From Felis catus (lineage: Eukaryota): a DNA stretch of 64,000 bases. This document shows positions 2,288-58,966 of the stretch, in pieces (within the stretch, counting starts at the first letter, position 1; each line of letters opens with the position of its first letter). The translations under genes were made by a program, and so were the position numbers. The stretch is from positions 82,708,001 to 82,772,000 of the forward strand of contig NC_058385.1 in NCBI RefSeq assembly GCF_018350175.1. Reading direction: 5' to 3'. A model generated the notes under the pieces. That model ran no database searches. It worked only from the letters and a program-made list of their open reading frames with translations, and was not told where the DNA came from.

Positions 2288-2300
2288 CTGACCTCACAAT
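2288..2300 (+). promoter_or_regulatory. CRE-like element CTGACCTCACAAT upstream of SPATC1
   Basis: TGACCTCA is one mismatch from TGACGTCA; about 140 bp upstream of the ATG; identical copy upstream of the paralogous exon at 42120-42132. Confidence 0.6.
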
Positions 2301-2437: not shown

Positions 2438-5400
2438 ATGTCTCTACTCGCCAATTATGAGGGGCTCCGGCATCAGATCGAGAGGCTGGTGAGGGAGAAC
2501 GAGGAGCTAAAGAAGCTGGTGCGGCTCATTCGGGAGAATCACGAGCTCAAGTCGGCGATCAAGACGCAGGCGGGCGGCCTGGGCATCAGCGGCTTCAGCA
2601 CCGGGTTCGGCCAGATGGCGGCCACTCCTCAACACCAGGGAAACTGTAAGAGACTGGGGCGGGGAGGGGGTCTCTGGGAGTCCTGGAGACAGGGCACGGA
2701 TAGTAACGAGCGGGTGGGACGGTGGCCCCACCAGGGGAGGACACGGGACCATCGGGACGGAGGGCAGAGCCGGGCACCAATTCCTGCACCCTGATGGGAG
2801 GAGGCCCCGCTCACCCCCCTCCTCTAGGCTGACCGTCCAAGCAGCCCCAAAAGGCTGTGAATTTCCCAGCTGTGGGATCCAAATGTGCCGCGCTCCTGGG
2901 TCTAGTGTGTCGCTTGCCCTCCTTCCCCCTCCCCCCCCCCCCAGCACCTCCCAGGGCCCTGCGCCTAGAGATGGCCACTGACAGCCCAGATCCAGGAGCC
3001 AGGGACAGAAACCAGGACCGAAGCTGAGGTCTGGGAGTCATTAGCGTGTGGCAGAGCCCTGGGGCTGGAGAAGATGTAGGGTGAGACGGAAGAGGCAAAG
3101 CACTAGCGGGCATTTGCAGAAAAAGTGGTGATCGGCAGGCTGGGGCCTCGGGAGCAGGGACTGAGCCAGGAGGGGGCCGGGAGGCCACGCGGCTGAGTGT
3201 GGTGATAGGGGCAGGGAGGGGCTGGGGACAGAAAGCTGTGGGCAGAAACTGGCTGGCACTGAAGATAACGGAGGGGGAATTTCTGGGGGTGGCAAGGCCC
3301 CAGGGTGAGGCGATAGGAGTCTGTGGCTGGCAGTGTGCTGTGAAGGTTACACAGGGCGAGCCGGCGATAAAACCCTGTGGTGGTCACACCGTAGCCATGC
3401 CCTCCCGACAGGGTCCTCCCTGTGCCAGAGAAGGCCCTGCGCCCCGCCCTCCCGCTGGCCCCTTCGTCCCCAGTCGGGCCCAGAATGGTCTTCCTCCCCG
3501 AGAGGAGGACTCTGCCCATCCTGGGGCCCCTGCAGCTCGGCCGTGGGCCACAACACTCAGCTGCTCCGGGAAGGTCACAGGTGGCTTCCTAAGTGCCACA
3601 TCCTTCTAAACCTCTGCGTGCAATTTGGGACCGATGACCCCCCTCTTTCTGGGTTTACCCTGGGCAGCGTCACCCACCCCCTGCTCCGGGCCAGCCCGGG
3701 CCCCGCGCTCCACCGCCAGCCAGCCCAGCACGGGCCCCCATTCTCCATGGGGCTGGAGGCCCCTGCAGACAGTCGTGCAGGCCCAGCAACTCCCTGGCAC
3801 TCGGCTCACTCCCAACCACACGTTTCTGATTGAGAACTTGGCCTTTCCACTGGGATGCTAAACCCTCCCAGGTCTGTGCTCCTGCCCTGAGGGTCCCACG
3901 CCAGGCCCTTACTCTTGGAAGCTGCCTCCCTCTGGTCCCCACACACCGGCTTCCCTGCTCTTGAACCACACTGTTCATCCGCGCGGCCTTCACCCCGTCA
4001 CTGGCCACAAGAGCACAGGCCTCTCCTCGGAAAGGCTTTATTGTAACGACTGAGACAATGCGTCGGCAAAAATAAAGACGCGGGGAGATACAAAATAAAA
4101 GAAATCTCAAAGCTTCACAAAAAAGTAAGTCTTCTCCTTTTGGGCTTGATTCTTAACAGAATCCTTGGGCCACGTTGGTTCTTCCCCTTCCTGAGGGGCC
4201 CAGCTTAGGGGGTTAGGAAAGGCTTTCTGGAGGGGGTGAGCCCACAGTGGTGGGAAGGCATTAGCGGGCGAGCAGCAGCTCCTGCAAACGCCAGGACCAG
4301 GGGGCAGCAGGGACGCGGGACCCGTCAGTGAGGCTGACGCCCAGGCTGTGTGTGGGTGAGCGTACTGGGTGCGTGGGCGGGGGGGGGGGGGGGGGGAGCG
4401 GCTAAGTGTGTTTGTACTGTGTGAGAATCGTGTGATTGTATCTGTGAGTGTCCTGTGAGTGTCCGTGTGGTTGTATCTGTGTGTGTGAAATCTGTGTGGT
4501 TGTATCCGTGACTGTGTGGGGTATTATCAGGGCCAGTGACACTGAGCAGTACAGCTAAAGAGGTCAGCAGAGGTCAGATCAGCGGGGACACAGGCCGGTT
4601 CCTAAGGGCAGAGAGCAGGGCCCGGTGGTTGTGGCGGAGTGAGTGAGCTCCTGCTGTGGAAGGAAGGGTCCCTCCAGCTGCTGTGGGGACGGGATTCGGA
4701 GGAGACGAGAGCGAGGCCAGGCCGCGCCGGCTGACACTGAGGCCCTTACAGCCCTGCGGGTGGCAGACCGCGGCCCGAACTAGGGGCGGAGAGAAACTGA
4801 CTCAAGCTAACTGCTTGGATGTGCAGGACGGACAAGGGAGTCCAGAAGGTGTCTCCGTTCGGGCAGAGGCGGTGGGGTGCCTGGCAGCGTGACCTCCTGA
4901 GACCGCGGAACTCTCGTCCCCGCGCCCAGCCAAGGAGGATCCCTGTGGTGGCCTCGGAGGAACTTTCTCTTTCTCAGGCCACTTCCTGCTTCTGCCTGCT
5001 CCTTGTGACTCACCTTCCTCGTGGAGTCAGGCTTTTACTCTTGATTTCCTCTTGTGAACTCAACCTCCAGTTCCTCTTTCCGGGCCCGCCCTTGCACTCT
5101 GGGTACGCTCAGGCCCGCGGTGCGGGGCTCAGGCCCATCCCCGCGGGAGAGGCAGCCCGGGCTGTGCCTGTGCTCCAGCGGCGCAGGGCTGCCCCCGGCT
5201 GGGAAGACGCCTGCGTGGAGCCACCAGTCCTGAAGCTCCGGCAGACGTCAGGGCTGGAGGGAGAAGGTTCAGGAGTATTGACCACTGAAGCCGCAGGAGG
5301 GGTGAGGCCACCTGAGAGGGGCGAGCGCAGCCGGTGCATGAGAGAAGCGGGGAGACGAGGGAAACCTCAGAGTGTGATGTCACAGAAGCCAAGGCACAGC

Positions 5401-8400: not shown

Positions 8401-11400
8401 CCCCTCCGCTCCCGCAGCGGTGAGTTCTCTGTACTGAAGAGTCTGTTTCTTGGTTTGCCTCTCGCTCCCTTGTTTTTTGAGGCTTTCATCTTTTTGTTTC
8501 TTAAATTCCATATGTGAGTGAAATCTTTCTCTGATTTATTTCGCTGACACTAACACCCTCCAGCTCCATCCGCGTCCTTGCAAACGGCAAGATTGCCTTC
8601 CTCTTCGTGGCTGAGTAATGTTCCCTTGTGTATTTACACTACATCTTTTTCCCTCAGATCCAGGATTAGGGTCTGGTTTAGGGCCACAATAAGGGGTAGG
8701 GTGTTTTGTTTGTTTGTTTGTTTGTTTGTTTGTTTGTTTGTTGTTTTAGGGCCAGGGTGAGGGTGTGGGCCTGTCTTCCTGCGGTTTAGAGACCTCTCCA
8801 GAGAATAAAACCGCAGACTTCTGTGGGGGTGAGAGTCATCCACCAAGCTGAGGCGAAGAGGGGATTTGTTGCTCTCTAAGTGGATTTTCTATTGGTCCTT
8901 CTCTTTTTATCTCTATCTTCACACCCATCTTCAGAAATACTATACATTCTTTTTTTTGTTGGTTTTGGTTTTGATCTGCACTCCCGTTAGTTAACACAGC
9001 GGGTCGGATCAGCTTCAGGTGTAGGATATAATGACTCAGCACCTCCATACGCCGCCCAGTGCACCCAGAGCACCCAGTGCTGATCCCAAGTGCACTGCTT
9101 CACCCATCCCCCACCCCCTCTGGAGGCCAGCAATATAACAACTTTATTGAGATACAATTCGCATACCATACAATTTGCCCACTTAAAAGTGTGTGATCCA
9201 GCAGATTTTTGTATACTCAAGGTGTGTACAAAGCACCACAATTTGAGAACGCTTCCGTCAGCCCAAGAAGAAACCTGTCAGCTAGCTGCTACCGCCTACC
9301 CCTTCACAACTCTCAGCAACCATTTATCTGCTTTCTGTTTTTATGAATTTGCCTAGTCTGGATTTTTTTTTTAATTTTTTTAATGTTTATTTATTTTTGA
9401 GACAGAGAGAGATAGAGCATGAGTGGGGGAGGGGCAGAGAGCGAGGGAGACACAGAATCGGAAGCAGGCTCCAGGCTCTGAGCGGTCGGCACAGAGCCCG
9501 ACGCGGGGCTCCAACCCACAGACCGCGAGATCATGACCTGAGCCAAAGTCGGACGCTTAACCGACTGAGCCACCCAGGTGCCCCACTGGATATTTCTTAT
9601 AAATGAATCACACACACGTGGCTTTTGGGTCAGGTTTCTCTCACTGAGCATAATGTTTTCAAGGTTTATCCATGTTGTGGCATAAATCAGTACTTTTAGT
9701 TGGGATTGTGGTTTTTTTGTTGTTTCAGGGATGAATAATATTTCATTAATGGCTACACAACATTTTGTTTATTCGTCAGTTGATGGACTTTTGCATTGTT
9801 TCCTCTTTTGGGGTACCATGGATCACACTGCTGTAAACATCCATATATGAGTTTCTGTGTGGATTTATGTTTCCATTTCTCTGGGGTATATATCTAAGAG
9901 TAGCATTGCTCGGTCATATGGTAACTCTATGTTTAACTGTTCGAGAAACTGCCAGATCGTCTCCCAAAGTGGCTGCACTATTTTTCATTCGCACCAGCAA
10001 TGTATGAGTGTTCCAATTTCTCTATATCCTTGCCAATACTTATTATCTGATTTTTTAATTATAGCCATCCTAGAGTGTGAAGTGGTTTTGATTTGCATTT
10101 CCCTGGTGCATANNNNNNNNNNNNNNNNNNNNNNNNNNNNNNNNNNNNNNNNNNNNNNNNNNNNNNNNNNNNNNNNNNNNNNNNNNNNNNNNNNNNNNNN
10201 NNNNNNNNNNNNNNNNNNNNNNNNNNNNNNNNNNNNNNNNNNNNNNNNNNNNNNNNNCTTACCAAATATGTGACCTGCAAGTGTTTTCTCCCATTCCGTG
10301 GTTGTCTTTGTTACCTTCTCGAAGGTGTCTTTTGAAGCAGAAGCTTTTAATTTGGATGATGTCCATCTCATCTATTGCTTCTTTCGTTGCTCACTCTTTG
10401 GGGATCACCTTTAAGACTCCATGGCCAAATCCAAGGTCATGGAAATTTACCCCTATGTCTTTTTTTTTTTAAGTGTATTTATTTTGTTTTGAGAGAGAGA
10501 GAGAGAGCACGAGTGGGGGAGGGTCAGAGAGGAGAGAGCGAGAATCCCAAGCAGGCTCTCCACTGAGAGTGCAGAACCCAATGTGGGGCTCCAACCCACA
10601 AACCATGAGGTCGTGACCTGAAGTTGGATGTTCAACCAACTGAGCCGCCCAAGCACTCCTGCCCCTGTGTTCCCTTCTAAGAATTTTACAGTTTTAGCTC
10701 TTACAGTGAAGCCTTGATCCATTTAACTTCTGTATATGATAGGAGGTAAGCGTCCAACTTCATTCTTTCACACGTGGGTTCCAGTTGTCCCAGCCCCATT
10801 TTTTGAAAAGATTATTCTTTCCCTGTTGAATTGTCTTGGCCTCTTCATCAAAAACGAGACCACAGATACATGGGTTTATTTCTGGACTCCCTATTCTATT
10901 CCATTTATCTATATGTCCCTCCTTATGCCAGAGTCACAGAATCTTGATTACTGTAGCAAGTTTTGAAATCTGAAACTGAGTCCTCAACTAACTTGCTTCC
11001 TTCCTTCCTTCGCTTCTTTCTTCTCTCTCTGTTTTTTTGTGGGTTTTTTTTGTTTGTTTTTTTAAGGTAGTGTAAGAGAGTGAAGTGCAGGCTAAGCAGT
11101 GATTGTAACAAGGAGTTCTCTTTTTTAAAATGTGGCTTTGGCCGTTCTGGGTCCCTTGCAATTCCTTGTGAATTTAAGGTTCAGCTCGGCCGTCTCTACA
11201 AAGAAGTCAGTTTGCATCCTGACGGAGATTGCACTGAATCTGCAGATAAACTTGGAGAGTACTGCTAGCAACAATATTAATATTGTTACTTCCAATATAA
11301 ATTAATATAAATTGGCTTCCAATGTGTGAACGTGGGACGTTTTTCTGTTTATTTAGATCTTCTTTAATTTCTTTCAAAAATGCTTGTAGTTTGGGGCGTC

Positions 11401-14400: not shown

Positions 14401-17400
14401 AATGAAATCTTGCCCATTTGCAATAACACGGATGAAGCTAGAGAGTATTGTTCTAAGCAAGATAAGTCTGTCAGAGAAAGACAATGTGATTTCACTCACG
14501 TGTGGAATTGAAGAAAAAAACCAAACGAGCAAATGGGGGGGAAGAAAGAAAGAAAGAGAGAAACAGAGAGGCAAAGCGAGAAACAGACTCTGAACTCCAG
14601 AGAAGACACTGCAGGTCACCAGAGGGGAGGGGAGTGGGGGCGGGTGAGCTAGGTGAGGGGGGGGATGAAGGGGTGCACTTGTGATGTATGGAAGGGACGG
14701 TTTTCTATGTTATTTTCCAAAATCTAATATTACACTGTTAAATGACTGGAATTGAAATTGAAAACTTAATAAAAAAAAAGATTTAGGTAGAATTAGTTGT
14801 CATTGGGAAAATTGGCCAATTTGATGCCCATCGATCAAGGAGGCTCCACATGGTGGCAGGTGGGGGAGCTGGGAACCGCAGCGGCCACGGAGCAGCGTCC
14901 TCAGGGAAGGGTGCAGCTGGAAGGCCGCGTGGGGGCCCAGCCGGACGACAAGTGGACGGAAGGACACGGGCGACAGAGAAGGCCCAGGAGCAAAGAACGG
15001 GGTTTACAGTTTTAAGTGATTGAAGGAGAATCAGGAATACTATTTCTGGACATGCGGAAAGTACCCAAAACTCAAACATCAGCGTCTCTGAATAAAGTTT
15101 TATTGGTACAGACCCACCGTATTTGTTTCCGTCACGTCTGGGGCCACGCTGGTACCACAGCCCCCAAGGTGATTGGTCACAAGAGAGACCGGACGCAAAA
15201 CTGGCCGTATTCACCACCAGCCCTTAATAGACGAGGTCCGTCTACCCCTGATCTATAAACTCACGGAGAGAGTCTTCAAGGCAACGCGGAGCTTTTCATC
15301 ACGCCTAATGGCAGGATGACAGGACTATGACGGTTCCTAATCTTTCTTTGGGCTTTTCCGTAGCTCCATCCTTTCTCTGTAGTGAGCGAGCGCGTGACGC
15401 CTAACGACAACCGCCTAACTGGCAGTTTTCACACTGCGCCCTCCCCCAGCTTCCGTGCCCCCAGGGGTCTTCTCCCCCCAAACAGTGGTCGTTCAAGGGC
15501 TCGCTCCTCAGGAACCCAAGGGAAATGGGCTGTCTGCCCCCCCACCCCCGCCCAGGGATCCAGGAGTATGAAGCAGCCGTGTCTGGGCCAGCCCACCCTC
15601 TTGAACCTGCATTCGCTATTCCCGGGGACGCTGCGGGCAGGCACGGACGAGCCACCATCGGTGCCGCTGAGGCTCTGTGCCTGTCCCAGCTCTGGCCTCC
15701 CTGAGCGTCCCACACCTGGTGCAGCTCTGCTGTCCCCACAAGGACAGTGGTCAGGAGTCCCGGGCCCACTGCTCCCCACCAGGGAATGGATGGGTCCACT
15801 TGGCCACCTGGGGGACCACCGCCGGGAGACCCTCCCCAGTGAGGGGTCAGTAGCTCAGTGCAGTGGGCACATGGAGGGCTGGGCAGCTGTGGAAGGTCCC
15901 TGTGACTTGGTGGGGGGGCAGGTGTGCAGAGAAGTGAGCCCAGGGGGACGAGGCTGCCTCAGAGGACGGAGAAGAAGCGGGCCAGACCCTCCGGTGGGAT
16001 CTGCCGAGTTGCCCCACAGACCCCGTCGGCGGGGGAGGGTCATCGTCCGGCCACCCAAGAGACAGGGGCAGAGCTGGTCAGCTCGTCAGAGGCAGGCAGG
16101 CACCCGGGCCCTCCCCCAGTGGGCCCGCCGGGGTCTCAGTGCTTTCTCTGTGTCCCCCAGGTGTCTTCCTGCCCCTGTCCCCGGCAGCAGCACATGAGCC
16201 CGTCCTGGAAGAAGTGGGCGTTGTGGCTCTGGCACCCCTGGCCGACATGCTAAGCAGCCCGCAGCCCGGCCCCACGGCAGACCCCATCGTGAGCCCCCTG
16301 ACGGGCCCCCTCAGCACCTTGCTGCCCGGTCCAGGGCCCATGTCACAGAGCGGCCTGTTCTCCAGCATCCTGACCGGCCCCCTGACTCCGAGCAGCCCCC
16401 TGGCCGGGCCCCTGGCAGTGGCCCCAGGAGGCACACTGGGCAGCTCCATGGGCACGGTCTCCACCGGCCCTCTGACTCCGAGCAGCACCCTGGCCGGCCT
16501 CATGGCAGTGTCCCCAAGAGGCACACTGGGAAGCTCCATGGGCCTGCCCTCCACCGGCCCCCCGACTCCGAGCAGCCCCCTGGCCGGGCCCCTGGCAGTG
16601 GCCCCAGGAGACACACTGGGCAGCTCCATGGGCACGGCCTCCACCGGCCCCCTGACCCCGAGCAGCCCCCTGATGGCACCTACGACAGGCACAGTGGCCA
16701 TCTCTCTGAGCAGCCCTCTGCTCACCTCCACAGCTGCCCCTCTAGGTGTTTCTCAGAACCTTGTGGCCAACCCCGTGAGCAATCTGGTGCTGCCGGCGGC
16801 CCAGAGGGTGCGGCTGACAGAGCCGTTCCGAGGATGCCCATCTGGACCCCCTCCCTCCGCTGGAGCAGGGCCTGCTGGCACCACCAAAGGTACCCGGTGC
16901 AGGGGGAGGGACAGGAGGGCACCCCCAGCCCCCGCCAGGCCGGTCCTGGGTCCTGACTTGCTCTGACCCTCCTTCTCTCCTCTCTGCCCCACAACGTCAC
17001 TAGTCCCAATGTCCACTGAGCACCCACAGCCGACCCAGAACCTGGAGCCTCTCGGCGTGACATTTGTGGGCGTGCCCTTGCACACCTCTACCCCCATGGA
17101 GACCAAGGGCGCAGCTGGCCCCGGGACGGCCTTCTCCTTCAGCACCTCGGACGCCCGGGCCCAGCCCGGTGCCCCCCAGGGACAAGCAGTTCCTGCCCCT
17201 GCCCCCGTCGCCCCTACTGCTGCCCCCCAAGCTACCACCGACTACGCCTCCCCCGGCACCACCCACGTTGCCCAGTGCCCACCCCCGTCCCCCACCCGGG
17301 CACACTGCCCCCCCACCCAGCCCTCATCCACCCCCCACTCCCCTCCTCGAAATCCCCATTCCCCACCTCGAACCTCGTCCTCCCCGGCTTCAGTCAACGA

Positions 17401-20400
17401 CCCCCGGGGTCCACGCGGCACAGAAACATCTCGGAAAAGCATGGTGGAGTTGGAACGGAAGCTAGCCCACAGGAAGATCAGCAAGTTTCCGGACAGCCCC
17501 CGAGGTCTGTGACACAAGTGCAGCACCACCAGTTGGGCGGGGTCTCCCCCGCTGCCCCTGTGGCCCTCCCTGGCCCCGGCCTGGGCCGAGGACCACTCCC
17601 TCCACCCCCTGTTGTCCTCAGAGTCGAGGCAGCTGGCCTGGGAGCGGCTGGTGGGGGAGATCGCCTTCCAGCTGGACCGCAGGATCCTGTCCAGTATCTT
17701 CCCCGAGCGCGTGCGCCTGTACGGCTTCACCGTCTCCAACATCCCAGAGAAGATCATCCAGGTGCCCGGTGCCCGGTTCCCCCTCACCACCAGAGGCCCT
17801 GTCCCTGTCACCCGTTAGGGTTGGGGGGGGGTGCGGGCCTTGGAGGAGCCGCTGGGGGGCCCTGCGCGCCAGCCTGGCCAAGCCCATCAGAGTCCGCGGG
17901 CACCCTGTGGTGGAGGAGGCATGGCGTTCAGCCCCAGTGGCCAAAAGGCGTCCAGGGCACTGGGAGCCTTGGAAGACACTGGGAGGGGAGCCGTCACGGG
18001 GTGTGGGCTGTGCCTGGCTGGATGCCCAGAGGAGGCTGTCCAGAACGATCGATCGCCTGTGCCTCCTCTCCCACCAGCGCGCCAACTCTGGCTGGGCCCC
18101 CACGCCGGGGGACGGGAGAGGCGAGCCTTTGGGGCTTTCCTTGGGAAATAGGCCTCTGTTCCTGGCCACCTTCTCTCCAGCGTTTTTATCTGTAGACTAT
18201 AGACCTGGTGTGTGATCGGCAGGAATAGCTCAGGGCTACTGTGGGCTCATCTGAGTCCCGGTTTGAGCTCACCTTTTCCTTTGGTGTGTGTCTCCTTTGG
18301 TTCGGTTTTTAATTTTAATGTGGTCAGAATGATCTACCTTTCCCTTTGTTTGTACTTTTCACGACTCCCTTAAAGCTAGAGCGGTAGAGGGCTGGGCCCA
18401 GCCCTGAATCCATCCCGCTTACCCCCCACCCCCCCCAGCCCCATGTGTGTGGGCTCTCCAACCGCCGCTCTGACTGTCCCCAGCCCATGCTGTCCTCCTT
18501 GGTGCAGTGACAGAGCCCGGCACCTCTCTTCTTCCAGATTGTTTCAGCTCCTCTGGGCCTCTCGCTCAGTGTGAATTTTAGGAGCACCCGTCAAGCTCCA
18601 GGAAAAACCTCATTCAAGTATTTGGTTTTGCATCACTTCCCAGATTGAACAGGGGGACGTTTCACGTCTTTACGGCGTCGGTTGTTCTGATACCCCTGCC
18701 ATTTCTGCTGCCCATGTCAGTGGGGTCCACCGTGGTCACGTTTGGTCTGAGGGTCCTTGATGCACAGCCAGGACCCCCGCCGCCAAGGCTGGGTCTCAAG
18801 TGCAGACTGGCCATGGCTAGTTAGCAACTGGCAAACCACACGGGCGTAAGCACAATATTTACGTCTCTACAGTGTTGCAGCTGGTATCCAGTTGGCGAAG
18901 AGGACATTGGATTACAATGTCTGGTTTAAAGTGTGGTAGAGCTTTCCCACTGTTTGAAACCCACCTTTAGACGGAAGGTGATAAAGACGTATCACCGTTG
19001 ACACGGGACTCTGCCCTGAGTCCGCTGTGCGAGCCCTCTGGTCCCCGGCCCCTCTCCACTTAGCGGGAGCCAGCAGTTCTGCCCAGGACTCCACAGTCAC
19101 AGCACCAGCCGGTAACTCCTAGAGGAGAGGCAGGAAGATGAGGGCGGGATGTACCGAAGGCACTTTTCTCCGGCGTCTGAGGAAGTCAAGGAGCTCGGTG
19201 CCCCCTGGGCCAGTGCTTGTGGGGGAGGGGCTGTGGCTGGCACCACTCATTCCGTCCCCAGTCCCGGAGCCATTGGCCCCATTCACCTTCCATCAGCAAT
19301 GACCAGTGCTGCCAGGGTCCTACACTTGTGCCCAAGCTCCTGAGAAGCGCCCTGCCGAACCCACCCGCACAGACGTTGTCTTCGGGCTCTGACACCCCCC
19401 AGCTGGCCCGCCGCAGGGTGACCCTGTCTGGTTCCACCCGAGGAGCACGAACGCTCTCAAGGCCATCCATCCTGCCTGCTGGCCCGGCCCATTTGTTGAT
19501 TCCTATCAGGATCCAATTCCACTTTGCCTAGACTTTTATTTCCTTTCCTGAAAACATCTTGTTTTTCTGCGCGTTGAACTCCAGTGTTGGTCGTTGTTAG
19601 AATCCCTAAATTCTATCCAGACCCACCACCCCTGGTCAAACCTGGTGTCCGAACCTGGCTCGTTTGCTTCACGGATGCTGGATAGTTTGACGACTGACAA
19701 GTTTCAATAGAGCCCCGTTGCCGAATGAGGACTTGTTGACTGTTTTCAGTGAATCTGGTCATCTGTTTTATAAGTTCACAGTCAGCTGTGCCATCTTTTA
19801 AACTCAACTAAAAGTTGTTCCGGTGCCCAGACCTGTCACCTCTTCTCCCCAGCTGCAAACATCTTCTGCTCCAGGTGGGGGTGGGGTGCTCTGAGTACCT
19901 TCCTTTCAGCTTGCAATCACAGCAGACCTGAGCCCAGCACCCGTGTGAGGGTCACGGAGGCACCTCATGGCTGTGTCCAGGTGGGTCCTGGGCCCCCTAG
20001 TGCTCTCTGGAGCCCCACGCACTGGCCTGCTGACAACAGTTGTGGTGTTTGCATAATGGTTTGTTTCCAGCTACCACGCCAAACTCTTGTTCTGGTTCTA
20101 ATAGCCTGTATATCATCTTGGCTTTTCTATGTAGACGGTCATATTGTACAGTGTTTACAAGAAGCAGATAATACAGCAACCTCATCCTGTTTCTGGCTTG
20201 ACTGCAAACACACACGTCAAGTCTGTCCATTAAGTACAATGTGTGTCCAGGCTTTTTGCCAAATCTTCTTCAGTCACAGTTCTTGGTTGCAGATAACAGA
20301 ATCAACACTAGCTGATGTAAACAGAAAGAGCTTTATTATACTTGTTTAGGTGAGGACACAAAACTGGGCACAGAAGTTGGTATGGCTGCCCCTGAAGAAC

Positions 20401-23400: not shown

Positions 23401-24390
23401 GAAAGGACAGGGGACATTCTCGGAGAAAGTGACGCCTCAGCAGCTCATCCCAGCAGGTTAGGAACCAGCAGGCGGGCATCCAGGAATGGTTGGAAGGGGA
23501 TGAGCAGGGCCAGAGTGGGGACCTTGCAGGTCAGGCCTGGCCCCAAGAGGTGGGACGTGTAGGAGGGCCTCAGGCAAGAGACCCCATCTACTTCAGACCT
23601 GACATTCTGTGGGCCTGGGGGCAGCTGCACGTGTGACAGAGACGTAATGCGCAGGACTCGGTGAAAATGAAATACAGGGCTCTCTGTTCAAACCTATAAA
23701 GAACTTCAAGATGGCTACAGCAGGACATTGAGCTGAGTGTGGGCCCTTCTGAGCCGGGGCCCTGAGTGAATGTCCAGGTCACATGCCCGAGAGGCAACGG
23801 CAGGAGTGGGGAGGAGGGGCCGCTCTCCTGGCGAGATGCCGCGGGACGCAGTCACTGCCCGGTTGGAAGGCACAGGCGGTAAAGAAGCGGGTGGAGACCC
23901 GCCGGGCTGCTGCCAGTCCCCAGACCTCTCTCCCAGGGCCTCCAGGACACCTCCCTCCAGCACATCGCCACAGCCACGCCCCTCAGCCGCACCTGCCCCT
24001 CTCTTGCCTTTGTGGCGGTGGGAGCAGGAGGGGCCCTGACGGCCGCCGCTCTCCCCTCAGGCCTCCCTGAGCCCCAGCGACCACAAGCTGGATGAAGAGC
24101 TGTGCCAGACACTCACGCAGCGCTACGTAAGCATCATGAACCGGCTGCAGAGCCTGGGCTACGACGGGCGCGTGCACCCGGCGCTCACCGAGCAGCTGGT
24201 GAACGCCTACGGGATCCTGCGTGAGAGGCCAGAGCTGGCCGCGTCCGAGGGCGGCTCCTACACCGTGGACTTCCTGCAGCGCGTGCTGGTGGAGACCGTG
24301 CACCCCAGCATGCTCACCGACGCCCTGCTGCTGCTCTCCTGCCTCAACCAGCTGGCGCATGACGATGGCAAGCCTATGTTCATCTGGTGA
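2438..24390 (+). CDS. SPATC1: Speriolin (spermatogenesis and centriole associated 1), 5 coding exons, 635 aa
   Basis: Exons 2438-2645, 16161-16889, 17004-17504, 17622-17761, 24061-24390; all GT-AG, phases 1,1,1,0, total 1908 nt. N-terminus [34 protein letters not shown]; C-terminal domain [17 protein letters not shown]...[10 protein letters not shown]; ATTAAA at 24443-24448. Confidence 0.95.
5240..5760 (-). mobile_element. Ancient LINE-2 fragment
   Basis: Degenerate L2-like motifs (gtgatgtcacagaagccaagg, gtgtcaacag...gctgaagagtccagg). Confidence 0.45.
7211..7555. repeat. GC-box minisatellite of variant 16-18 bp units
   Basis: Recurring GGCCCCGCC core followed by CCATGAG, CAGTGCTCT or TCGTGAC. 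Confidence 0.85.
7757..7971 (-). mobile_element. Can-SINE
   Basis: Reverse-complement SINE ending actgagccacccaggtgtccc. Confidence 0.88.
8290..9110 (-). mobile_element. LINE-1 3' end fragments flanking a (TTTG)n microsatellite at about 8703-8742
   Basis: ttaaattccatatgtgagtgaaatc...tccatccgcgtccttgcaaacggcaagatt; cttcaggtgtaggatataatgactca. Confidence 0.7.
9363..9583 (-). mobile_element. Can-SINE (SINEC_Fc-like)
   Basis: Near-consensus reverse SINE, TSD ctggat. Confidence 0.93.
10113..10257. other. Assembly gap (others at 48228-48400, 48763-48920, 48927-49121)
   Basis: Runs of N, all inside L1 sequence. Confidence 0.99.
10459..10660 (-). mobile_element. Can-SINE
   Basis: Reverse SINE with (GA)n. 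Confidence 0.88.
11392..11600 (+). mobile_element. Can-SINE
   Basis: ggggcgtctggggggctcagtcagtt head, (CT)n, A tail. Confidence 0.9.
11633..11848 (-). mobile_element. Can-SINE, tail-to-tail with the previous SINE
   Basis: Reverse SINE ending gagccacccaggggcccc. Confidence 0.9.
12200..13150 (-). mobile_element. LINE-2 3' portion, CpG-enriched
   Basis: gaggacctcaccgaggaggtcac...ctccaggccgagggagcag...gaggtcagagaggtgacaggccagatcatggagggcc are typical L2 motifs. Confidence 0.6.
13990..14780 (+). mobile_element. Carnivore LINE-1 3' end
   Basis: gtgggaatgcaaactggtgcagc...gatgaatggatgaagaag...A tail. Confidence 0.85.
14960..15250. mobile_element. hAT-Charlie DNA transposon, MER58-like
   Basis: aataaagttttattggtacagacccac core; terminal ...ctacccctg. 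Confidence 0.6.
16373..16671 (+). repeat. Coding tandem repeat, 90-bp (30-aa) unit x3.3, in SPATC1 exon 2
   Basis: Units start at 16373, 16463, 16553 and 16643 (partial); first unit [30 protein letters not shown]. Confidence 0.95.
20820..21016 (-). mobile_element. Can-SINE
   Basis: Reverse SINE ending gagccccccaggcgcccc. Confidence 0.88.
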
Positions 24391-36500: not shown

Positions 36501-38177
36501 ACAGCACCTGCACGTCCTGTGGGAGAGCGGCAGCCAGTAAGGGGCCGGGCAGGCAGGGGTGGGGCGGGCGGAGCAGGCCGGCAGGGGGCCTCACCTTGAG
36601 CTGGCCCCGGAAGCCACGGCGGAAACCCTGCACGTAACGCCGGATGGTGGGGGTAAGGTAGGCGTCGGCACAGGCCGTGTGCCCCCGAGGCACGATGCGC
36701 ACCATGGGCATGGTGTCCGAGGACAGTGCCACGTGGGTGAAGCCCAGCTCCCGGGCCAGTGCGCCCACCTGCTGCTCATGCTGGGCCCACCTGTAACGAC
36801 GACCCCACGGCGCTTCGCCTCTTGCCCACGGCCTCCGGCCCACCGCCCAGAGCCCCGGCCGAGCCCCGCTCACGTGTAGGAGTGCATGAGCACCACGGCC
36901 AGGCTGCGGACACCTCGGGACAGGAGTGCCTCCAGCTTCCCACGCAGAGCCCCAAGGTCCACAGGCTGTCGCACCTCCAGCAGGTCCCCCGTGCGGCCTG
37001 CCAGGAGGCCCGTTACCATCCGTCAAAGGCCCACCCTGCTGCCCCCGTGCCCCCAGCCCTGAGGCACCCGCACCTTTGACAGGTGTCCCTGCACCTGGCT
37101 CCCCGCGATACAGCACCACGCGCTCGTCCACCTCCAGCACCTCTTCGTACAGCACCTCAGGCATGGGCACGGCCTGGGGACAGGCAGAGGCTCAGAGGAC
37201 ACCCAGGCCCGAGGGTCCTTGCTGGGGTCCTGCGCGGGTGGGGCAGTGCGGGCGAGGGGATGTGTCCCGGCAGTCCAGTCCATAGGCCCAGGAGACACAG
37301 ACGGGGCCAGCCCCAGCAAGGCCCCCCCACCCCCAAGGAGTGGCTCTCTGCCCCCAGGCACCTGAGTGCAGCCAACTGCCACCCCCGCAAGGGCAGCTCC
37401 CTGGAGGAGCCCAGCAGTAGGGGTGGGGGTAGGGGAGTGGGAGAGTGGAGGTGGCTCCTACCCCTCACCCCGAACAGTATGTCTTGGGGGTGCTCCACAC
37501 CCAGGATCCAGGACAGGGCATGGTGACAGACAGGAGCAAGACGTTGTGACCACTCTGAGGGCTTGGGGGACAGAGTGCCTGCTAGGAGTGTCTGGAACCT
37601 TCTCTCCGCCTATAAGCTGCTAGCCTGGGGCCAACACTGACCCTTCCAAGGGCTGCCTTCCCGAGGGGCCAAGGCATCCCTGGGAAACCATGAGCAGCTG
37701 CACGACGCAGCCACCAGCTGGAGTGGGTGCGCTCACCAGGTCAAAGAGGTCCTCTCGGGCCTGGGTGCCCACGTGCAGCAGGTCTCGGAAGCCACGCGTC
37801 ACCAGCAGCGCCACCCGCTCCCCCCGCCGCTCCAGCAACGCGTTGGTGGCCACCGTGGTGCCCATGCGGATGCTGGCAATGCGGCTGGTGTCCAGCGGCT
37901 GGTCCCGCGGCAACACCACGCCTCCTTCCTGGGAACCACAGGGTCCAGTGTCAGGCCCCGGTCCCAGGTCCCTCCCCAGCCCGCCCCTCTGCCCTGCCCT
38001 GGCCACCTGCTCCAGGATGCGGCGGATGCCCTCAGTAGGGGCGTCTGCATAGTTGGCGGGGTCCTCTGAGAGCAGCTTCAAGACCCTCACTTGCCCCCCG
38101 GGGCACTGGGCAAAGACATCTGTGAAGGTGCCTCCACGGTCGATGGCGAAATGGAAACGCCCCTCGGGGCTGCCCAT
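28905..38177 (-). CDS. OPLAH: 5-oxoprolinase (ATP-hydrolysing), 26 coding exons, 1288 aa
   Basis: Exons (minus): 38177-38007, 37928-37737, 37173-37074, 36997-36874, 36790-36595, 36516-36351, 36237-36099, 36003-35936, 35796-35531, 35393-35281, 35193-35023, 34835-34698, 34611-34473, 34352-34240, 34011-33860, 33195-33035, 32951-32850, 32767-32593, 31061-30877, 30751-30605, 30510-30376, 30235-30086, 29994-29837, 29755-29595, 29402-29305, 29051-28905 = 3867 nt. [20 protein letters not shown]...[10 protein letters not shown]; AATAAA (minus) at 28888-28883. Confidence 0.97.
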
Positions 38178-38349
38178 GGTGACAGGGCTGGAGTCCAGCA
38201 CTGACTCTTCAGCCGGCAGTCCTGGGAGAACTGGACGGAGACAGCAGATCAGGCGACAGGCCCGGGGGTCACCCGCGGCTTGGTAGCCTTGGGCAGAGCC
38301 GGGCTGAGGAGAGCAAGGTGGGGCGGGGGGGGGGGGGGGGGGGGTCGGA

Positions 38350-39250
38350 GGAGGCGCCCGGGGCCGAGCCCGGGGCTGCAGGCCCAGCTCAGAGCGCCGC
38401 CTGAGGCGCGGCCGCAGCCGGGCAGGTGGGGGCGCCAGACCTAACGCCCCCCGTTACCCTGTTCTCAGGGCCCCGGCTTGCGGCGCAAATCCCCGGACCC
38501 GCCAGAGGCGGAGGCGCCCCGGGGAGCCCACGGGCTGGTGGGTCTGGGCTCCTATAGCACGAGGAGGCACGGGGGCTGGGGGCAGGTGACTTCCCCAGTC
38601 GCTCGACCTTGGGGCCCAGGCCGAGTGGGACAGGGGGCACGGGGCGGGGCCTGCGCCGGGGAGGGGGCGGGGCTCGCGGCCGGGTTGGGGGCGGGGGCGG
38701 GGAGGCGGGGAGAAGCGGGGCGCTGGAGGGTCCGGGTGCGGGGCCCACCTGGCGGGTCGGCTCCCAGGCGCTCGCGGTCCGCTCGGGCCGCGCTCCCTCC
38801 CGGCCCTGCCCGCCGCACCCCCCCCTCCCCCCGCCCGGAAGCGGGGCCCGCCCCCCGCCCGACCGGTCCCGCCGCCCACGGCCCTCCGGGTTGCGTCAGG
38901 TTCGGCTCGCCGGGAGCCGCCTCCCTCCTCCGCCGGGAGCCACGCCGGGGGACCGCGGGGCGCGGGGCCGAGCTGGGCCAGGGGCGGCTCCGTGCTGGCG
39001 CGTCCCCGGCCGCCGGCCACCTCGGTTCAGCCGGCCACTCGAGGTGCCCCGGGGAAGGCGGAGCAGGCCACCCTCCGAAGAAGTAAGAGCCCAGACGAGC
39101 TCGGACTGCACCCTGGCGCGGGGCAGTCACGCCGTGAGGGACGGGGCTGGGGAGGGGGGTCGTGGAGGGGCCCCGGGCAAGGGCCCCTCCGTAGCCGTCA
39201 ACCCCGCTGCTGCCCGCCCAGGGCCGGCCTTGCCACAGCCCAGGCTGGGC
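38350..39250 (-). promoter_or_regulatory. OPLAH: OPLAH CpG-island promoter with probable non-coding exon 1 (donor after 38749)
   Basis: Very CpG-dense with GC boxes; donor ccgccag|gtgggc at 38749/38748; second candidate donor cagg|gtaacg at 38458/38457; exon 2 acceptor ttctcccag| at 38222. Confidence 0.7.
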
Positions 39251-40769: not shown

Positions 40770-41050
40770 CTGCCTAACTTCCTGTACTGAAGCCTACCGG
40801 ACCTTAGGGGGGTGACAAAGTCATGAGGATGGGTCCCCATGATGGCATTAGTGCCCTTATAACAAGAGACGGAAGGGGTTGTCTCCAGAATGTGAGGACA
40901 CAGCCGGACAGTGGCCAACTCTCAGCCAGCAAGAGAGCCTCGCCAAGAACCGTGCCGGCGCCCTGATCTCCGACTTCCAGCCTCCAGAACTGTGGGAAGT
41001 GGATTGTTGAAGTCGTCAGCCTGTGGTGTTTTCATGGAGCAGCCCACACT
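40770..41050 (+). mobile_element. MaLR LTR, MLT1A-like
   Basis: gtcatgaggatgggtccccatgatggcattagtgcccttataa...gacttccagcctccagaactgtg. Confidence 0.75.
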
Positions 41051-41817
41051 CCCTGAACCGCCTCTCCAGAGACCATTGTCTGCCTGTTAACATCTCCGGG
41101 CCCTCAGAAGCAGGGATGGGACACTGTGCCAGGACTGACATGGCCCACACGCTCCCTGGCCACTTGTATCTCCCGGTGGATCTGCACAGCCAGAGGCTTC
41201 CGGGAAGCGTGGTGCCTGTCCCCATGAGAGCTGGGGTCCCCTCAGCCTGCCCGTGCCAGGGGGAGCGCCCCAGTTGCACTGCTCAAACCCTAGGAACTGC
41301 CTTCAAGTGCCACTTTCCCACCAGCACGCCCAACCCGCCCAAGTATATCCAGAGCCCCCGGCACTGTTCACTCCCCCTTCCAGCCAAGCCTGTGATTTCT
41401 CACCAGGAGAACGACCCCGACCTAGAAGACCCTCCTGGTCCTCATCTGCTCTCCACTCCACCAACGCTGGCCTCAGCACTGTGCCTCAACACGCTCGACC
41501 CGCTGCCACCTCAGGGCCTTTGCACGGACCATTCCCTCAGCTCTACCCCAGCCTTGTGGCCCCTTCACTTTGGTCCAGTCCTGCACCAATGTCACTTTCT
41601 CGGAGATGTTACTTTCTCCCCGCTGCCTTCCTAAAGAGGCCCCGGCCCCCGTATCACTCCTCAGCACCTTCCGCACCTGACGAGCCATCGCCCCACGGGA
41701 GCAGGGACCCCCCGCCCCCCCTGCCCCTGCCGCTTTCCCCTGTCTTGGCACAAGCTTGAACGAGTGAAGCCTCGTGGGCATCTGAGAAGAGCCCCCGCGG
41801 GCCCTGGCGCTCCTCAC

Positions 41818-42052
41818 CTCTTTCGGCATCCTTGAACTTGATGGTTCTGCGCCGGGGCAGCCGGGGGCTGGTGGCCACCTCGGCCAGGAGCCCGGAGCCA
41901 CAGAAGCCCAGGCCTCTGCCCCGGGTCTGGAGCACCAGCTTCAGCTCCTGGTTCTCCTGGATGAGCTGCACAAGCCGTCGCAACTCTTCGTTCTCCTGGG
42001 CCAGCCGCTGGATCTCCCGCCGCAGACCCTCGTAGCTGCTGAGGGGGGACAT
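41818..42052 (-). CDS. Speriolin N-terminal-domain paralogous exon; putative alternative coding first exon of OPLAH
   Basis: MSPLSSYEGLRREIQRLAQENEELRRLVQLIQENQELKLVLQTRGRGLG...RRRTIKFKDAER; ungapped 29/49 identity to SPATC1 exon 1; strong donor GAG|GTGAGG in phase 1, the same phase as SPATC1 exon 1. Confidence 0.8.
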
Positions 42053-42119
42053 GCCCGGCAGCAGGGGGGGGGGGCAGCTGCCAGCAGCTGTCGCCTGGCC
42101 AGGAGTAGCGGACCCCGTC

Positions 42120-42217
42120 ATTGTGAGGTCAGCGGCCGCCCCTGCCCCCGGGCCTCAGCCGCATTCCGGGGGTCAGAGCCAAGGCCCCTTGAGCAGGGCA
42201 CACCTGACCTCTGACCT
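42120..42217 (-). promoter_or_regulatory. Putative germ-cell promoter of the speriolin-like exon
   Basis: CTGACCTCACAAT at 42132-42120 (minus), identical to 2288-2300; perfect DR1 AGGTCAgAGGTCA at 42217-42205. Confidence 0.55.
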
Positions 42218-42844: not shown

Positions 42845-43076
42845 TTTTTTTTTTTTTTTTTAATTTTTTTTTTCAACGTTTATTTATTTTTGGGACAGAG
42901 AGAGACAGAGCATGAACGGGGGAGGGGCAGAGAGAGAGGGAGACACAGAATCGGAAACAGGCTGCAGGCTCTGAGCCATCAGCCCAGAGCCTGACGCGGG
43001 GCTCGAACTCACGGACCGCGAGATCGCGACCTGGCTGAAGTCGGACGCTTAACCGACTGCGCCACCCAGGCGCCCC
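42845..43076 (-). mobile_element. Young Can-SINE (SINEC_Fc-like) with TSD
   Basis: CpG-intact consensus; TSD aggacttcctt on both sides. Confidence 0.95.
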
Positions 43077-43519
43077 AGGACTTCCTTCTTTCATGCCATG
43101 TGCCCTCTACCGGCACAGCTCTCTGCCTCCGCTGTCGTTGTCTGTCCTTTCCTTGTATTATGATTGGCGTTTACTTCGCCATCATCTCCTGCCTGCTGAC
43201 CCCCTCAGCACAGTTGCCACTTGTAGACCCGAAGTCCTCCTGGGATTTGCACGCCCTTCCCCGGCTGCTTCAGTGTGGCCTGGCCAGCTCCGGGGGTCTT
43301 CACAGAGCAGACTGCGGGGGAGGCTGACAGCAGTGCCCCAGGGGACGGGGTGGGACCCGTGCTCAATCTCAAAGGAAATGGTGACAATTTTAATAGTTCC
43401 TATAACTAGGAAGTGTCCTGATTCTGACCATGATGGAGTAGAGTATTTCCGAAAGGACTAGACATCTTACCTCAAGGGCGTGACAGGCTCAGGGCAGTCG
43501 CGGCCGGGACTGGTCTGTG

Positions 43520-47208: not shown

Positions 47209-50028
47209 TGTAACATGCCAAAAATCTATGAATACAGCAAAATCAGTTCTAAGAGGGAAGTTCATAGCAGTACAGGCCTACCTCAAGAAGAAAAATCTCA
47301 AACAAACAATCTAACTTTACACCTAAAAGAACTAGAAAAAGAACAAGCAAAGCCTAAAGTTAGTTGAAGGAAGGAAATAATAAAGATAAGAGCAGAAATA
47401 AATAAAGACTAAAAAGAGAATAGAAAAGATTAATGGTTCTTTGAAAAGATAAAAACCTACAAACCTTTAGCTAGACTAACCAAGAAAAAAAAAAAAGATA
47501 GAGGGATCAAATAAAGACAGGCAGAAAGAGAAGTTACAATTGATACCACAGAAATACAAAGAATCGTAAGAAACTACTATGAACAATTAAATGTCAACAA
47601 ATTGGACAACCTAGAAGAAATAGGTAAACTCTTAGAAACATACAATTTTCTAAGACTGAATCAGGAAGAAATAGAAAATCTGGATATACTTATTTCTAGT
47701 AAGGAGATTGAATCAGTAATCAGAAACCTCCCAACAAACAAAAGTCCAAGACTAGATGTTTTTGCTGGTGAATTCTTCCACACCACGCCCCCAACTGGTG
47801 AATTCTATCAAACATAAAAAAAAAAAAAAATTTAATACCTATCCTTCTCAAACTCTTCCAAAGAATTGAAGAAGAGAGAACACTTTGAAACTCCTTTTAC
47901 AAGGCTAGCATTACCCTGATACCAAAAACAGACAAGGACACAACAACAACAACAAAAAAGAAAATTACAGGCCAATATTTTTTTATAATCATAGATACAA
48001 TAATCCTCAATAAAATATCAACAAACTGAATTAAACACTACATTACAAGGATCATACACCATGATTAAGTAGGATTTATTTATTTGTTCAACATCCACAA
48101 ATCAATCAACATGATACACTACATTGACAAAAGGAAGAAGAAAATTCATATGATCATCTCAATACATGTGAAAAATGCATTTGGCAAAATTCAACATCCA
48201 CTTATGATCAAAATTCTCAACAAATTGNNNNNNNNNNNNNNNNNNNNNNNNNNNNNNNNNNNNNNNNNNNNNNNNNNNNNNNNNNNNNNNNNNNNNNNNN
48301 NNNNNNNNNNNNNNNNNNNNNNNNNNNNNNNNNNNNNNNNNNNNNNNNNNNNNNNNNNNNNNNNNNNNNNNNNNNNNNNNNNNNNNNNNNNNNNNNNNNN
48401 AGGCAGGATAAGTAAATAAAAAGCATCTAAATTGGAAATAAAGAGGTAAAAATGTCATTATTTGAAGATGATGTAATACTATATAGAAAACTCTAAATTC
48501 TCCACCAAAAACCTATTAGAACTAGTCAACACATTCAATAAGGTTGTAGGATACAAACTCAATTTACAGAAATCTGTGACATTTCTTTTTTGTGTGTGGT
48601 ATTTCTATATACCAATAATTACCTATAAAAATGTAAATTAAGAAAGCAATCCTACTTACAATTGCATCAAAAAGAATAAAATACCTAGAAATAAGTTTAA
48701 CCAAGGAAGTGAAATCTGAACACTGAAGACTATGAGACACTGATGACAGAAAATTGAAAACANNNNNNNNNNNNNNNNNNNNNNNNNNNNNNNNNNNNNN
48801 NNNNNNNNNNNNNNNNNNNNNNNNNNNNNNNNNNNNNNNNNNNNNNNNNNNNNNNNNNNNNNNNNNNNNNNNNNNNNNNNNNNNNNNNNNNNNNNNNNNN
48901 NNNNNNNNNNNNNNNNNNNNGTAGGANNNNNNNNNNNNNNNNNNNNNNNNNNNNNNNNNNNNNNNNNNNNNNNNNNNNNNNNNNNNNNNNNNNNNNNNNN
49001 NNNNNNNNNNNNNNNNNNNNNNNNNNNNNNNNNNNNNNNNNNNNNNNNNNNNNNNNNNNNNNNNNNNNNNNNNNNNNNNNNNNNNNNNNNNNNNNNNNNN
49101 NNNNNNNNNNNNNNNNNNNNNTATGAAGAAGCCAAGAACATACAATGGAGAAAGGACGATCTCTTCAATAAATGGTGCTGGGAAAACTGGACAGCCGCAT
49201 GCAAAGGAATGAAACTTGACCACTATCTTACACTATACACAAAATTAACTCAAAATGAACTAAAGGCTTGAGTATAAGACCTGAAACCATAAAATTCCTA
49301 GGCGAAAACAAAGGCAGTCAGCTCCTTGACACTGGTCTTAGCAATATATTTGTGGATCTGACTCCAAAGAAAGGGAAACAAAAAGCAAACATAAACAAAT
49401 GGGAAACTAAAAAGCTTCTGCACCGCAAAGGAAACCAGAACCAGAAAGAAAAGGTATCGACTGAACAGAAGATACTTGCAGGTCCTACATCTAATAAGGG
49501 CTTAATATTCAAATATATAAAGAACTCATAAAAAGTAAGGAACTCATACAACTCAACAATTTAAAAAACAACCTGATTTAAAAATGGGCAGAGGATCTGA
49601 ATAGATATTTTTCCAAAGACAAACAGGTGGCCGACGGACACGTGAAAAGACGTCCAACATCGCTAATTATTGGGGAAGTGCAAACCAAAAGCACGATGAG
49701 ACCGACACCGCCTCTCACCTGTTAGAATGGCTAGAAATCACAAGTGTTGGCCAAGATGTGGGAAAAAAGACGACCCTCGCGCACTGTTGGTGGGAGTGGA
49801 AATTGGTGTAGACACTGTGGAAAACAGTATGGAAGTTCCTCAAAAAATTAAGAGTAGAATTGCCGCATGACCCAGCCATTCCACTTCTGGACGCTTTTCT
49901 GAAGAGAACAAAAACAATAATTCAAAAAAGATATCTGCACCCTTATGTGCATAGCAGCATTACTTACAGTCATCAAGATATAGAAACAACCCAAGTGTCC
50001 ATCAGTGGATGAATGGATAAAGAGGATG

Positions 50029-56918: not shown

Positions 56919-58966
56919 ATGGCGGGCCTGGAGCTGCTGTCGGATCAGGGCTACCGGGTAGACGGACGGCGCGCCGGGGAGCTGCGCAAGATCCAGGCGC
57001 GGATGGGCGTGTTCGCGCAGGCCGACGGCTCGGCCTACATCGAGCAAGGCAACACCAAGGCGCTGGCGGTGGTCTACGGGCCGCACGAGGCGAGTGGGCG
57101 TGCGCGAGCTGGGCGGGGTGCGCGGGGCCTCCAGGCTGAGCTGAAGATGCCGAGGCGACAGCCGTCGCGCGCCGCGTCCACCCAGCCCATCTTCAGGGCC
57201 GCCGCCGCTCGCTCGGCTCCAGAGCCAAAGTCCTGGCAGCGTGGTGCACCGTGGTCCCCGCCTTTCTCACCGGCCTCTCTCCCCTCCGCCCTGCCCTCCT
57301 CTTTGCTCTTCCTCAAAGCGCCCCCGGCTCTCCCGCGTTCGCGTCCTCTCTCTGCTCTCTACTCTGACGTCATCCCCCGGGTGACGCCTCCCCAGACCGC
57401 CTTCCTCACGTGGCAAGCCCCCTCCCCTACAACCACACACTTCCCTGCCTTTCGGTCACTTCAGACGGCAGTCTAACTCCGTGAGGACAGGGACTTTATT
57501 TTTATTTTTTAAAACATTTTTTTTTAACGTTTATTTATTTTTGAGACAGAGAGACAGAGCATGGACGGGGGAGGGGCAGAGAGAGAGGGAGACAGAATCG
57601 GAAGCAGGCTCCAGGCTCTGAGCCATGAGCCCAGAGCCCGACGCAGGGCTCGAACTCAACGGACCGCGAGATCGTGACCTGAGCTGAAGTCGGACGCTTA
57701 ACCGACTGAGCCACCCAGGCGCCCCGAAGGGACTTTAAATAAAATCCTGATTTTTTATTGCCTTGTCTCCGTTGCTGGAGAAGGGAAGACCACTGGGGTG
57801 GAAGCAAACACAGCACGTCCGCAGAGTGGAAAGGCTGCTGGTGGGAGGTGGGGGATTGCTCAAAGTGAGATTGAGGGCTTTCTAGGAAGGTGAGAACTCA
57901 CCGCTTCGCAGACCAGGGAAAGTATTTATGATTTTGTGTCACACGTGATGGGGAAGCTTTGGGAAGGCAGTACCATATGTGAGCGTGTAGAGGAGACAAA
58001 GTCAGACTTGATACTTGTGAATATACCGGCCCTGGCTACAAATGGAGAATGGGCTGGGAGGGGATGAGGCGAGGATGGAAACGGGGAGACCTGAGGGGGG
58101 ATGATGGCTTAGAGATGGGCCAAGTGGCCCTCCTGTGGGGCGTTTGAAGGTAAAGTGGCTGTGTTGTTGAGATGTTGGAAGAAGGAGGAGGGGTGGGAAG
58201 GAGCCTGAGGTCCGGGGCCTGAGCTAGAGGAAGGTGTAGTGCGAGCTGGCAGGAGTGAGGCTGGCTCATGTGTCCTTCCTCCCCTAGATCCGGGGCTCCC
58301 GGGCACGAGCCCTGCCTGACAGGGCCCTGGTGAACTGTCAGTATAGTTCTGCGACCTTCAGTACAGGCGAACGCAAGCGGCGACCACATGGGGACCGTAA
58401 GTCTTGTGAGATGGGCCTGCAGCTGCGTCAGACCTTCGAGGCGGCCATCCTTACACAGCTGCACCCACGCTCCCAGATCGATATCTATGTGCAGGTGAGC
58501 AGGCAGCAGCTATCCGCCTGGGGAGGGAGAGGGATGGGGTGGGGGTTGGGAGTCCGAGGTCAAGAGCCTGATACACTGATGCCGCTGGTGGGCGCGGTTC
58601 CTGCAGGTGCTGCAGGCCGACGGTGGGACCTACGCAGCTTGCGTGAACGCAGCCACGCTGGCAGTGCTGGACGCCGGGATACCCATGCGGGACTTCGTGT
58701 GCGCCTGCTCGGCTGGCTTTGTGGACAGCACGGCCCTGGCGGACCTCAGCCACGTGGAGGAGGCAGCTGGTGGCCCCCAGCTTGCCCTGGCCCTGCTGCC
58801 TGCCTCAGGCCAGCTTGCACTGCTTGAAATGGACGCCAGGCTGCACGAAGACCACCTGGAGCAGGTGCTGGAGGCTGCTGCCCGGGCTGCCCGTGACGTG
58901 CACACCCTGCTGGACCGTGTGGTTCGGCAGCATGTACGGGAGGCCTCCATTTTGCTAGGGGACTGA
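56919..58966 (+). CDS. EXOSC4: Exosome complex component RRP41, 3 exons, 245 aa
   Basis: Exons 56919-57089, 58288-58494, 58607-58966; MAGLELLSDQGYRVDGRR...ASILLGD; intron 1 donor GCGAGT; AATAAA at 58989-58994. Confidence 0.97.
57495..57725 (-). mobile_element. Young Can-SINE in EXOSC4 intron 1
   Basis: Consensus-like; TSD agggacttta. Confidence 0.94.

Follow-up and report, generated by a model that had tools for sequence, protein, structure and literature searches.

A conserved inverted copy of SPATC1 exon 1 as a candidate alternative germ-cell first exon of OPLAH

The window examined here, a stretch of 64,000 nucleotides of Felis catus DNA, holds a second, inverted copy of the first coding exon of SPATC1 in the interval between OPLAH and EXOSC4, on the OPLAH strand and 3.6 kb upstream of OPLAH exon 2. 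On the comparisons set out below, we class this copy as a so far undescribed candidate for a germ-cell alternative promoter and first exon that OPLAH would have gained by partial duplication of its neighbour, and we consider this fusion to OPLAH rather probable. The features concerned, in window coordinates, are the following.

41818..42052, minus strand: Speriolin_N-type coding first exon (the copy); ATG 42052-42050; 235 nt = 78 codons + 1 base, phase 1
41816..41817, minus strand: splice donor GT of the copy exon, context GAG/GTGAGG, graded strong
42120..42132, minus strand: 13-mer CTGACCTCACAAT, 67 nt upstream of the copy ATG, in a CpG-poor region
2288..2300, plus strand: 13-mer CTGACCTCACAAT, 137 nt before the SPATC1 ATG
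2438..2645, plus strand: SPATC1 exon 1, the parent paralogue; ATG 2438; 208 nt = 69 codons + 1 base, phase 1
16160-17761, plus strand: SPATC1 large exon
24058-24387, plus strand: SPATC1 Speriolin_C exon
~27.9-28.1 kb, plus strand: SMPD3-like exon (PDB 5uvg, E 1.5e-8)
~28.9 kb to ATG 38177-38175, minus strand: OPLAH
38007..38230, minus strand: OPLAH exon 2; acceptor AG 38232-38231; donor after 38007; canonical ATG 38177-38175
start near 56.9 kb, plus strand: EXOSC4 (RNase_PH)

The two speriolin-type exons converge over a distance of 39.6 kb, in agreement with the earlier note on this DNA, which had them facing each other about 39 kb apart and enclosing SMPD5 and OPLAH; between them lie the SMPD3-like exon, recognised in a PDB sequence search, and OPLAH, as well as the rest of SPATC1. 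A Pfam search of the SMPD5 region returned no match. Copies of a tRNA-derived SINE were seen at ~42870-43080 (minus strand), with similar pieces near 9400-9770 and 57540-57900, all of which resemble carnivore Can-SINEs, in keeping with a carnivore source, and three runs of N fall in a very AT-rich stretch at 48228-49121 (GC 0.26).

ORF calling and translation gave a minus-strand reading frame from the ATG at 42052 to a stop at 41654-41656, 132 aa in all. The length and stop previously given for an unspliced product were thus reproduced, but a stand-alone protein of that kind was not borne out: great-ape models splice in frame, conservation stops at the donor and the tails beyond it differ, so that the 132-aa unspliced protein is not what selection sees. 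An in-frame ATG further upstream, at 42121 (155-aa ORF), was considered as the start and rejected; it lies inside the 13-mer, whose frame differs between species and whose spacing to the copy ATG is different by 1 nt in a ruminant contig (L001), and is therefore not a conserved start. The Speriolin_N profile search that had been proposed for this exon was run, and the Pfam profile (PF15058) matched over its positions 1-60 with 58.6 bits (E 1.2e-15), against a gathering cut-off of 27.9 bits. Codons 7-31 make up a leucine zipper of four heptads whose a/d core, in the register that sets L10 at d, consists of Y7, L10, I14, L17, N21, L24, V28 and I31, with Asn at an a position, and a Gly/Ser-rich linker and a basic RRRTIKFK stretch follow it. 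This core is nearly invariant across 35 orthologues of the copy exon. A predicted complex of the two paralogue zippers scored 0.10 against a mark of 0.34, which favours neither binding nor its absence.

Within the window, tblastn aligned the copy exon with SPATC1 exon 1 at 50.8% identity over 65 aa (E 1.6e-15), and SPATC1 exon 1 was the only other match to it. The ungapped identities reported earlier, 25/38 and 29/49, were both reproduced, a recount again found different synonymous codons at 11 of the 25 identical residues, and the start context was kept as described, gggcATGtc being common to the two exons. The retained donor phase stood in part: both exons (235 nt and 208 nt) end in phase 1, but the donor positions are non-homologous, that of the copy lying 27 nt, or 9 codons, further 3'. 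Read-through ORFs of SPATC1 exon 1 from several species (P0015, P0017, P0024 and P0027) share a similar ...KRP.FK..G.G tail, which in the window falls at 2646-2700 (plus strand), the start of intron 1, and this KRP.FK-type tail resembles the 3' end of the copy exon (RRRTIKFKDAERG, RRRTIKFKD). One history that this suggests, unproven though it is, is a duplication that took in the first part of SPATC1 intron 1, together with a shift of the donor by 9 codons in the 3' direction in the copy. BLASTP did not extend the paralogue homology into the 3' tail (RRRTIKFKD against the SPATC1 KRP.FK read-through). At the other end of the protein, marsupial SPATC1 models (P0026, P0030 and P0034-P0036) begin 27-28 residues ahead of the conserved MSLL start; the resulting N-terminal extension is rich in Pro and Arg and has no counterpart in placental models.

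When the window was searched by tblastn with cattle and Tasmanian devil SPATC1, with 40831-40872 masked, no second copy of any SPATC1 exon other than exon 1 was found. Because exon 1 alone is doubled and shares an upstream motif with its duplicate, the event was a partial DNA duplication, and a retrocopy or processed pseudogene of SPATC1 was ruled out. That the duplication is old, local and inverted and has been kept as coding sequence, as the earlier note had proposed, is supported by a dN/dS of 0.215, by intact frames in ~36 of 42 clusters and by a paralogue synonymous divergence of ~0.6-1.1; dS between copy and SPATC1 was 0.64-1.06, versus 0.29 for carnivore-ruminant orthologues of the copy. 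A tree with SPATC1, another of the checks put forward earlier, was built on 46 ungapped columns from placental and marsupial SPATC1, the copy and reptile speriolin-like proteins. The therian SPATC1 clade (support 99/97) excluded the copy, which fell near the centre of the tree, close to the reptile proteins. Forcing the copy to group with placental SPATC1 cost 12.5 log-likelihood units at a borderline AU p of 0.049, which disfavours a placental-only origin; a grouping with therian SPATC1 as a whole, or one with the reptile proteins, was not rejected by the AU test. Judged on these 46 columns and a borderline p, the duplication is probably older than the marsupial-placental split.

The shared 13-mer occurs in the window at the two speriolin-type exons only, where 0.07 matches are expected by chance, and its complement contains TGTGAGGTCA, a CRE/NR site with a 5' extension. 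In translated read-through ORFs it was recovered 23-26 codons before M1 in at least 10 orthologues of the copy, and because it is kept there in two different reading frames it is non-coding; in four other species it lies 45-50 codons before M1 of SPATC1, and in L001 it stands 66 nt before the ATG of the copy, as against 67 nt in the window. Upstream of the two exons, MAFFT aligned nothing more than the 13-mer and the ~12 nt that precede the ATG. The observed/expected CpG ratio was 0.31 upstream of the copy, 0.40 upstream of SPATC1 and 0.72 at the canonical OPLAH 5' CpG island. The CRE/NR site TGAGGTCA, which is bound by CREMtau and GCNF and directs haploid male germ cell expression, is enriched in testis-specific promoters (PMC2853129). 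The region before the copy has the sequence characters of such a promoter, namely a CpG-free TGAGGTCA or TGTGAGGT near the start in a CpG-poor setting, and we infer that the copy brought a spermatid-type promoter along. Long C runs were noted at 38330-38360 (minus strand), in the OPLAH 5' CpG island, and at 42062-42072 (minus strand), just upstream of the copy ATG; the length of such runs may vary, which could affect the spacing to the motif.

Conservation of the copy was followed with a profile-free scan of 1.84 billion representatives, which yielded 48 relatives, 10 of them clear orthologues of the copy (67-87% identical), with the SPATC1 set apart at ~50-57%. The copy-type exon was present in 39 protein clusters at 90% identity, and its named carriers are Artibeus, Myotis, Delphinus, Bos mutus, Bison, Tupaia, Pongo and Pan. 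With the orthologues in register, the majority-residue frequency fell from 0.98 over residues 1-42 to 0.79 over residues 43-78 and to 0.42 beyond the donor. Read-through ORFs of the orthologues have G at residue 79 in 33/35 cases and E at residue 80 in 28/35, which reveals a conserved G/GTGAG donor; the ruminant donor is weak (GTGCAC). The frame was intact in ~36 of 42 mammalian clusters, across Boreoeutheria, and disrupted or shortened in Bison P0110, P0108, P0013, P0031, P0006 and possibly P0008, where the breaks may be real lineage-specific losses or contig errors. The broken orthologues show a frameshift or a scrambled N-terminus, and in two bovid sequences the break lies at about the same position, after RRR.

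The dN/dS estimate proposed earlier was made on a single pair of orthologous DNAs, the window and L001, the latter being the sole locus from a metagenome scan. Over the exon the two were 89% identical with no indel in 234 nt, their differences were distributed 6/5/14 by codon position, and dN was 0.063 and dS 0.293, giving an omega of 0.215 (Fisher p 0.001), well off 1; over zipper codons 1-42 omega was 0.11. The intron of the same pair aligned over 760 nt at ~51% with 252 gap columns. In P0082, from a very close relative of the window's species, 0 of 78 exon positions were changed, compared with 6 of 54 in the read-through tail (p 0.004). Six replacements (L3P, Q12R, R42Q, N43T, S46R and S47G) are private to the window's lineage and are all shared with P0082; they may reflect a locally relaxed or altered constraint.

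The phase-1 donor of the copy and the acceptor of OPLAH exon 2 are on the same strand and in phase. An 18-codon open OPLAH leader (38230-38178) continues the frame and is followed by the canonical ATG, and a second in-phase acceptor (AG 38223-38222) lies 9 nt downstream of the first. The leader is of equal length and stop-free in seven mammalian lineages. Strand, position upstream of exon 2, phase and open leader are thus all those of an alternative first exon of OPLAH. A complete member of the Speriolin/SPATC1 family would carry Speriolin_C downstream in the same gene, and this the copy does not have, Speriolin_C occurring once only in the window (24058-24387).

The copy exon and OPLAH exon 2 were searched as separate queries, and a Pongo entry (P0004, PNJ07998.1, 254 aa, 'OPLAH isoform 5, partial') contains exactly the junction of the copy exon with OPLAH exon 2. 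The 90% cluster of this entry also holds Pan PNI46278.1 ('OPLAH isoform 5, partial') and a human entry (P0049), and it lists Logan and JGI contig members of 150-175 aa (P0051-P0056), which by the clustering rule should span the junction. Gene models of Tupaia and Bison tie the copy exon to OPLAH exons as well, messily; the clean model was met in great apes only, and no model of the isoform 5 type was seen for the window's species, in which use of the junction is predicted. In Macaca mulatta, a 5-oxoprolinase-like isoform X3 (P0117) has a different upstream coding exon that enters the same exon 2 acceptor in frame, so that at least two predicted isoforms translate the leader.

The same exon could instead belong to a small stand-alone 'speriolin-like' gene, unspliced or spliced elsewhere, whose product of 95-155 aa would join the 78 conserved residues to a variable tail and work as a zipper microprotein in its own right, with speriolin as one conceivable partner. 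RefSeq and GenBank models of this form exist in Artibeus, Delphinus, Myotis brandtii and Bos mutus, the ORF in the window stays open for 54 more codons past the exon, and all 20 of the sequencing runs that hold the stretch also hold intron words, 0/20 being on record as RNA. The tail, however, varies in sequence and length (majority frequency 0.42, with stops at differing places), whereas the GT donor is conserved and is used in the great-ape models, and we regard a separate gene as unlikely, if still worth keeping in mind. A mainly regulatory role, with an upstream promoter and upstream ORF that tune germ-cell expression of OPLAH and a functionless peptide, would fit the conserved promoter motif and the position of the exon within the OPLAH 5' region. 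Omega, however, is 0.11-0.22, changes fall mostly at third codon positions (6/5/14) and the heptad core is invariant, which together mean constraint on a protein, beyond that on DNA alone; regulation by itself seems to us improbable.

Least of all do the data favour a decaying pseudo-exon, a remnant of the old duplication without present function, for which the frameshifts in a few lineages and the six private replacements might be cited. Frames are intact in ~36/42 clusters across Boreoeutheria, omega is 0.215 beside an adjacent intron that can hardly be aligned, and P0082 has accumulated changes in the tail and none in the exon; for these reasons we reject decay, to which we attach very little probability. 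The view that the exon is not a decayed pseudo-exon, which the earlier note had reached from the letters, is upheld by the dN/dS of one pair, the intact clusters and the end of conservation at the donor. Of the two signs of decay that it had named together, a dN/dS near 1 was not observed, and broken frames were observed in 5-6/42 clusters only.

The explanation that we prefer, capture of the copy by OPLAH, would run as follows. A segment of SPATC1 comprising the promoter-proximal CRE/NR element, the start codon and the first coding exon would have been duplicated in inverted orientation, to a place 3.6 kb ahead of OPLAH exon 2; the event probably antedates the separation of marsupials and placentals. 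What survives would be a first coding exon with an alternative promoter, poor in CpG and of the haploid-spermatid type, the phase-1 donor after 41818 joining the exon 2 acceptor before 38230. Translation from the ATG at 42052 would then give 78 speriolin-type residues (the four-heptad zipper and basic linker), 18 leader-encoded residues and full-length 5-oxoprolinase. Expression in testis, and in spermatids in particular, is what the promoter predicts, and the zipper may serve in dimerisation or in targeting. Speriolin belongs to the centrosomal proteins and is known from spermatocytes, spermatids and the neck of the sperm (review PMC8471410), and OPLAH has been found in a human sperm proteome (PMC9161277). 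It is conceivable, as a long shot, that the zipper is a targeting module which pairs with speriolin or with itself in spermatids and brings 5-oxoprolinase to the centriole or connecting piece of the sperm neck, so that the gamma-glutamyl/glutathione cycle would have been local at the head-tail junction since before the therian split.

The copy exon is already public in three guises, as part of a partial OPLAH isoform, as 'speriolin-like' genes and as a UniProt 'Speriolin N-terminal domain-containing protein', and what is new here is the interpretation, not the sequence. No paper on the copy exon came out of a literature search that combined OPLAH with the topics SPATC1, speriolin, spermatid and alternative first exon, and OPLAH and SPATC1 were met together only as neighbouring genes in association studies. 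If capture by OPLAH is correct, the locus would clearly exemplify, in mammals, the gain of a domain via partial duplication of a neighbouring gene: OPLAH, a metabolic housekeeping gene of the glutathione cycle, would have taken over an inverted copy of the promoter and first exon of SPATC1, a testis gene of the sperm centriole, and purifying selection would have preserved it in several orders of placentals. An unstudied isoform of 5-oxoprolinase in germ cells, bearing the zipper of a centrosomal protein, is then predicted, and the short 'speriolin-like' genes annotated in several genomes may be incomplete renderings of this OPLAH isoform.

Set beside its parent, the copy has the same eight zipper a/d core residues, the same start context and the same Speriolin_N match as SPATC1 exon 1, and the same CRE/NR 13-mer upstream. 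The two differ in that they are 51% identical, with the changes at b, c, e, f and g positions and mostly from R/K/H to Q, in that the copy exon is 9 codons longer, in the distance from 13-mer to ATG (67 nt as against 137 nt), and in that Speriolin_C and other exons follow exon 1 in the SPATC1 gene, whereas none follow the copy. The 'speriolin-like' and 'Speriolin' models (Artibeus jamaicensis, Delphinus delphis, Myotis brandtii; Bos mutus A0A6B0S2N7) contain the same exon with Speriolin_N recognised, but are short read-through ORFs unjoined to OPLAH. The Pongo and Pan 'OPLAH isoform 5, partial' models have the orthologous exon (86% identical) with the same donor, acceptor and 18-codon leader, as partial models of 254 aa without a described function, and two partial human 5-oxoprolinase entries (KAI2551752.1 and KAI4012395.1) are tied to the great-ape isoform through cluster membership.

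Testis ACE is one example of an alternative promoter and first exon that a CRE/NR site drives in germ cells. Another parallel is the testis promoter of mGPDH (PMC2853129), which has a CpG-free TGAGGTCA or TGTGAGGT element close to the start, as in the copy, and is an additional promoter of restricted tissue use that lies upstream of a housekeeping promoter with a CpG island, as the copy would be for OPLAH. The copy, known here by sequence, differs from the mGPDH testis promoter in that both its promoter and its coding exon would have been imported by duplication from a neighbouring testis gene, thereby adding a foreign protein domain.
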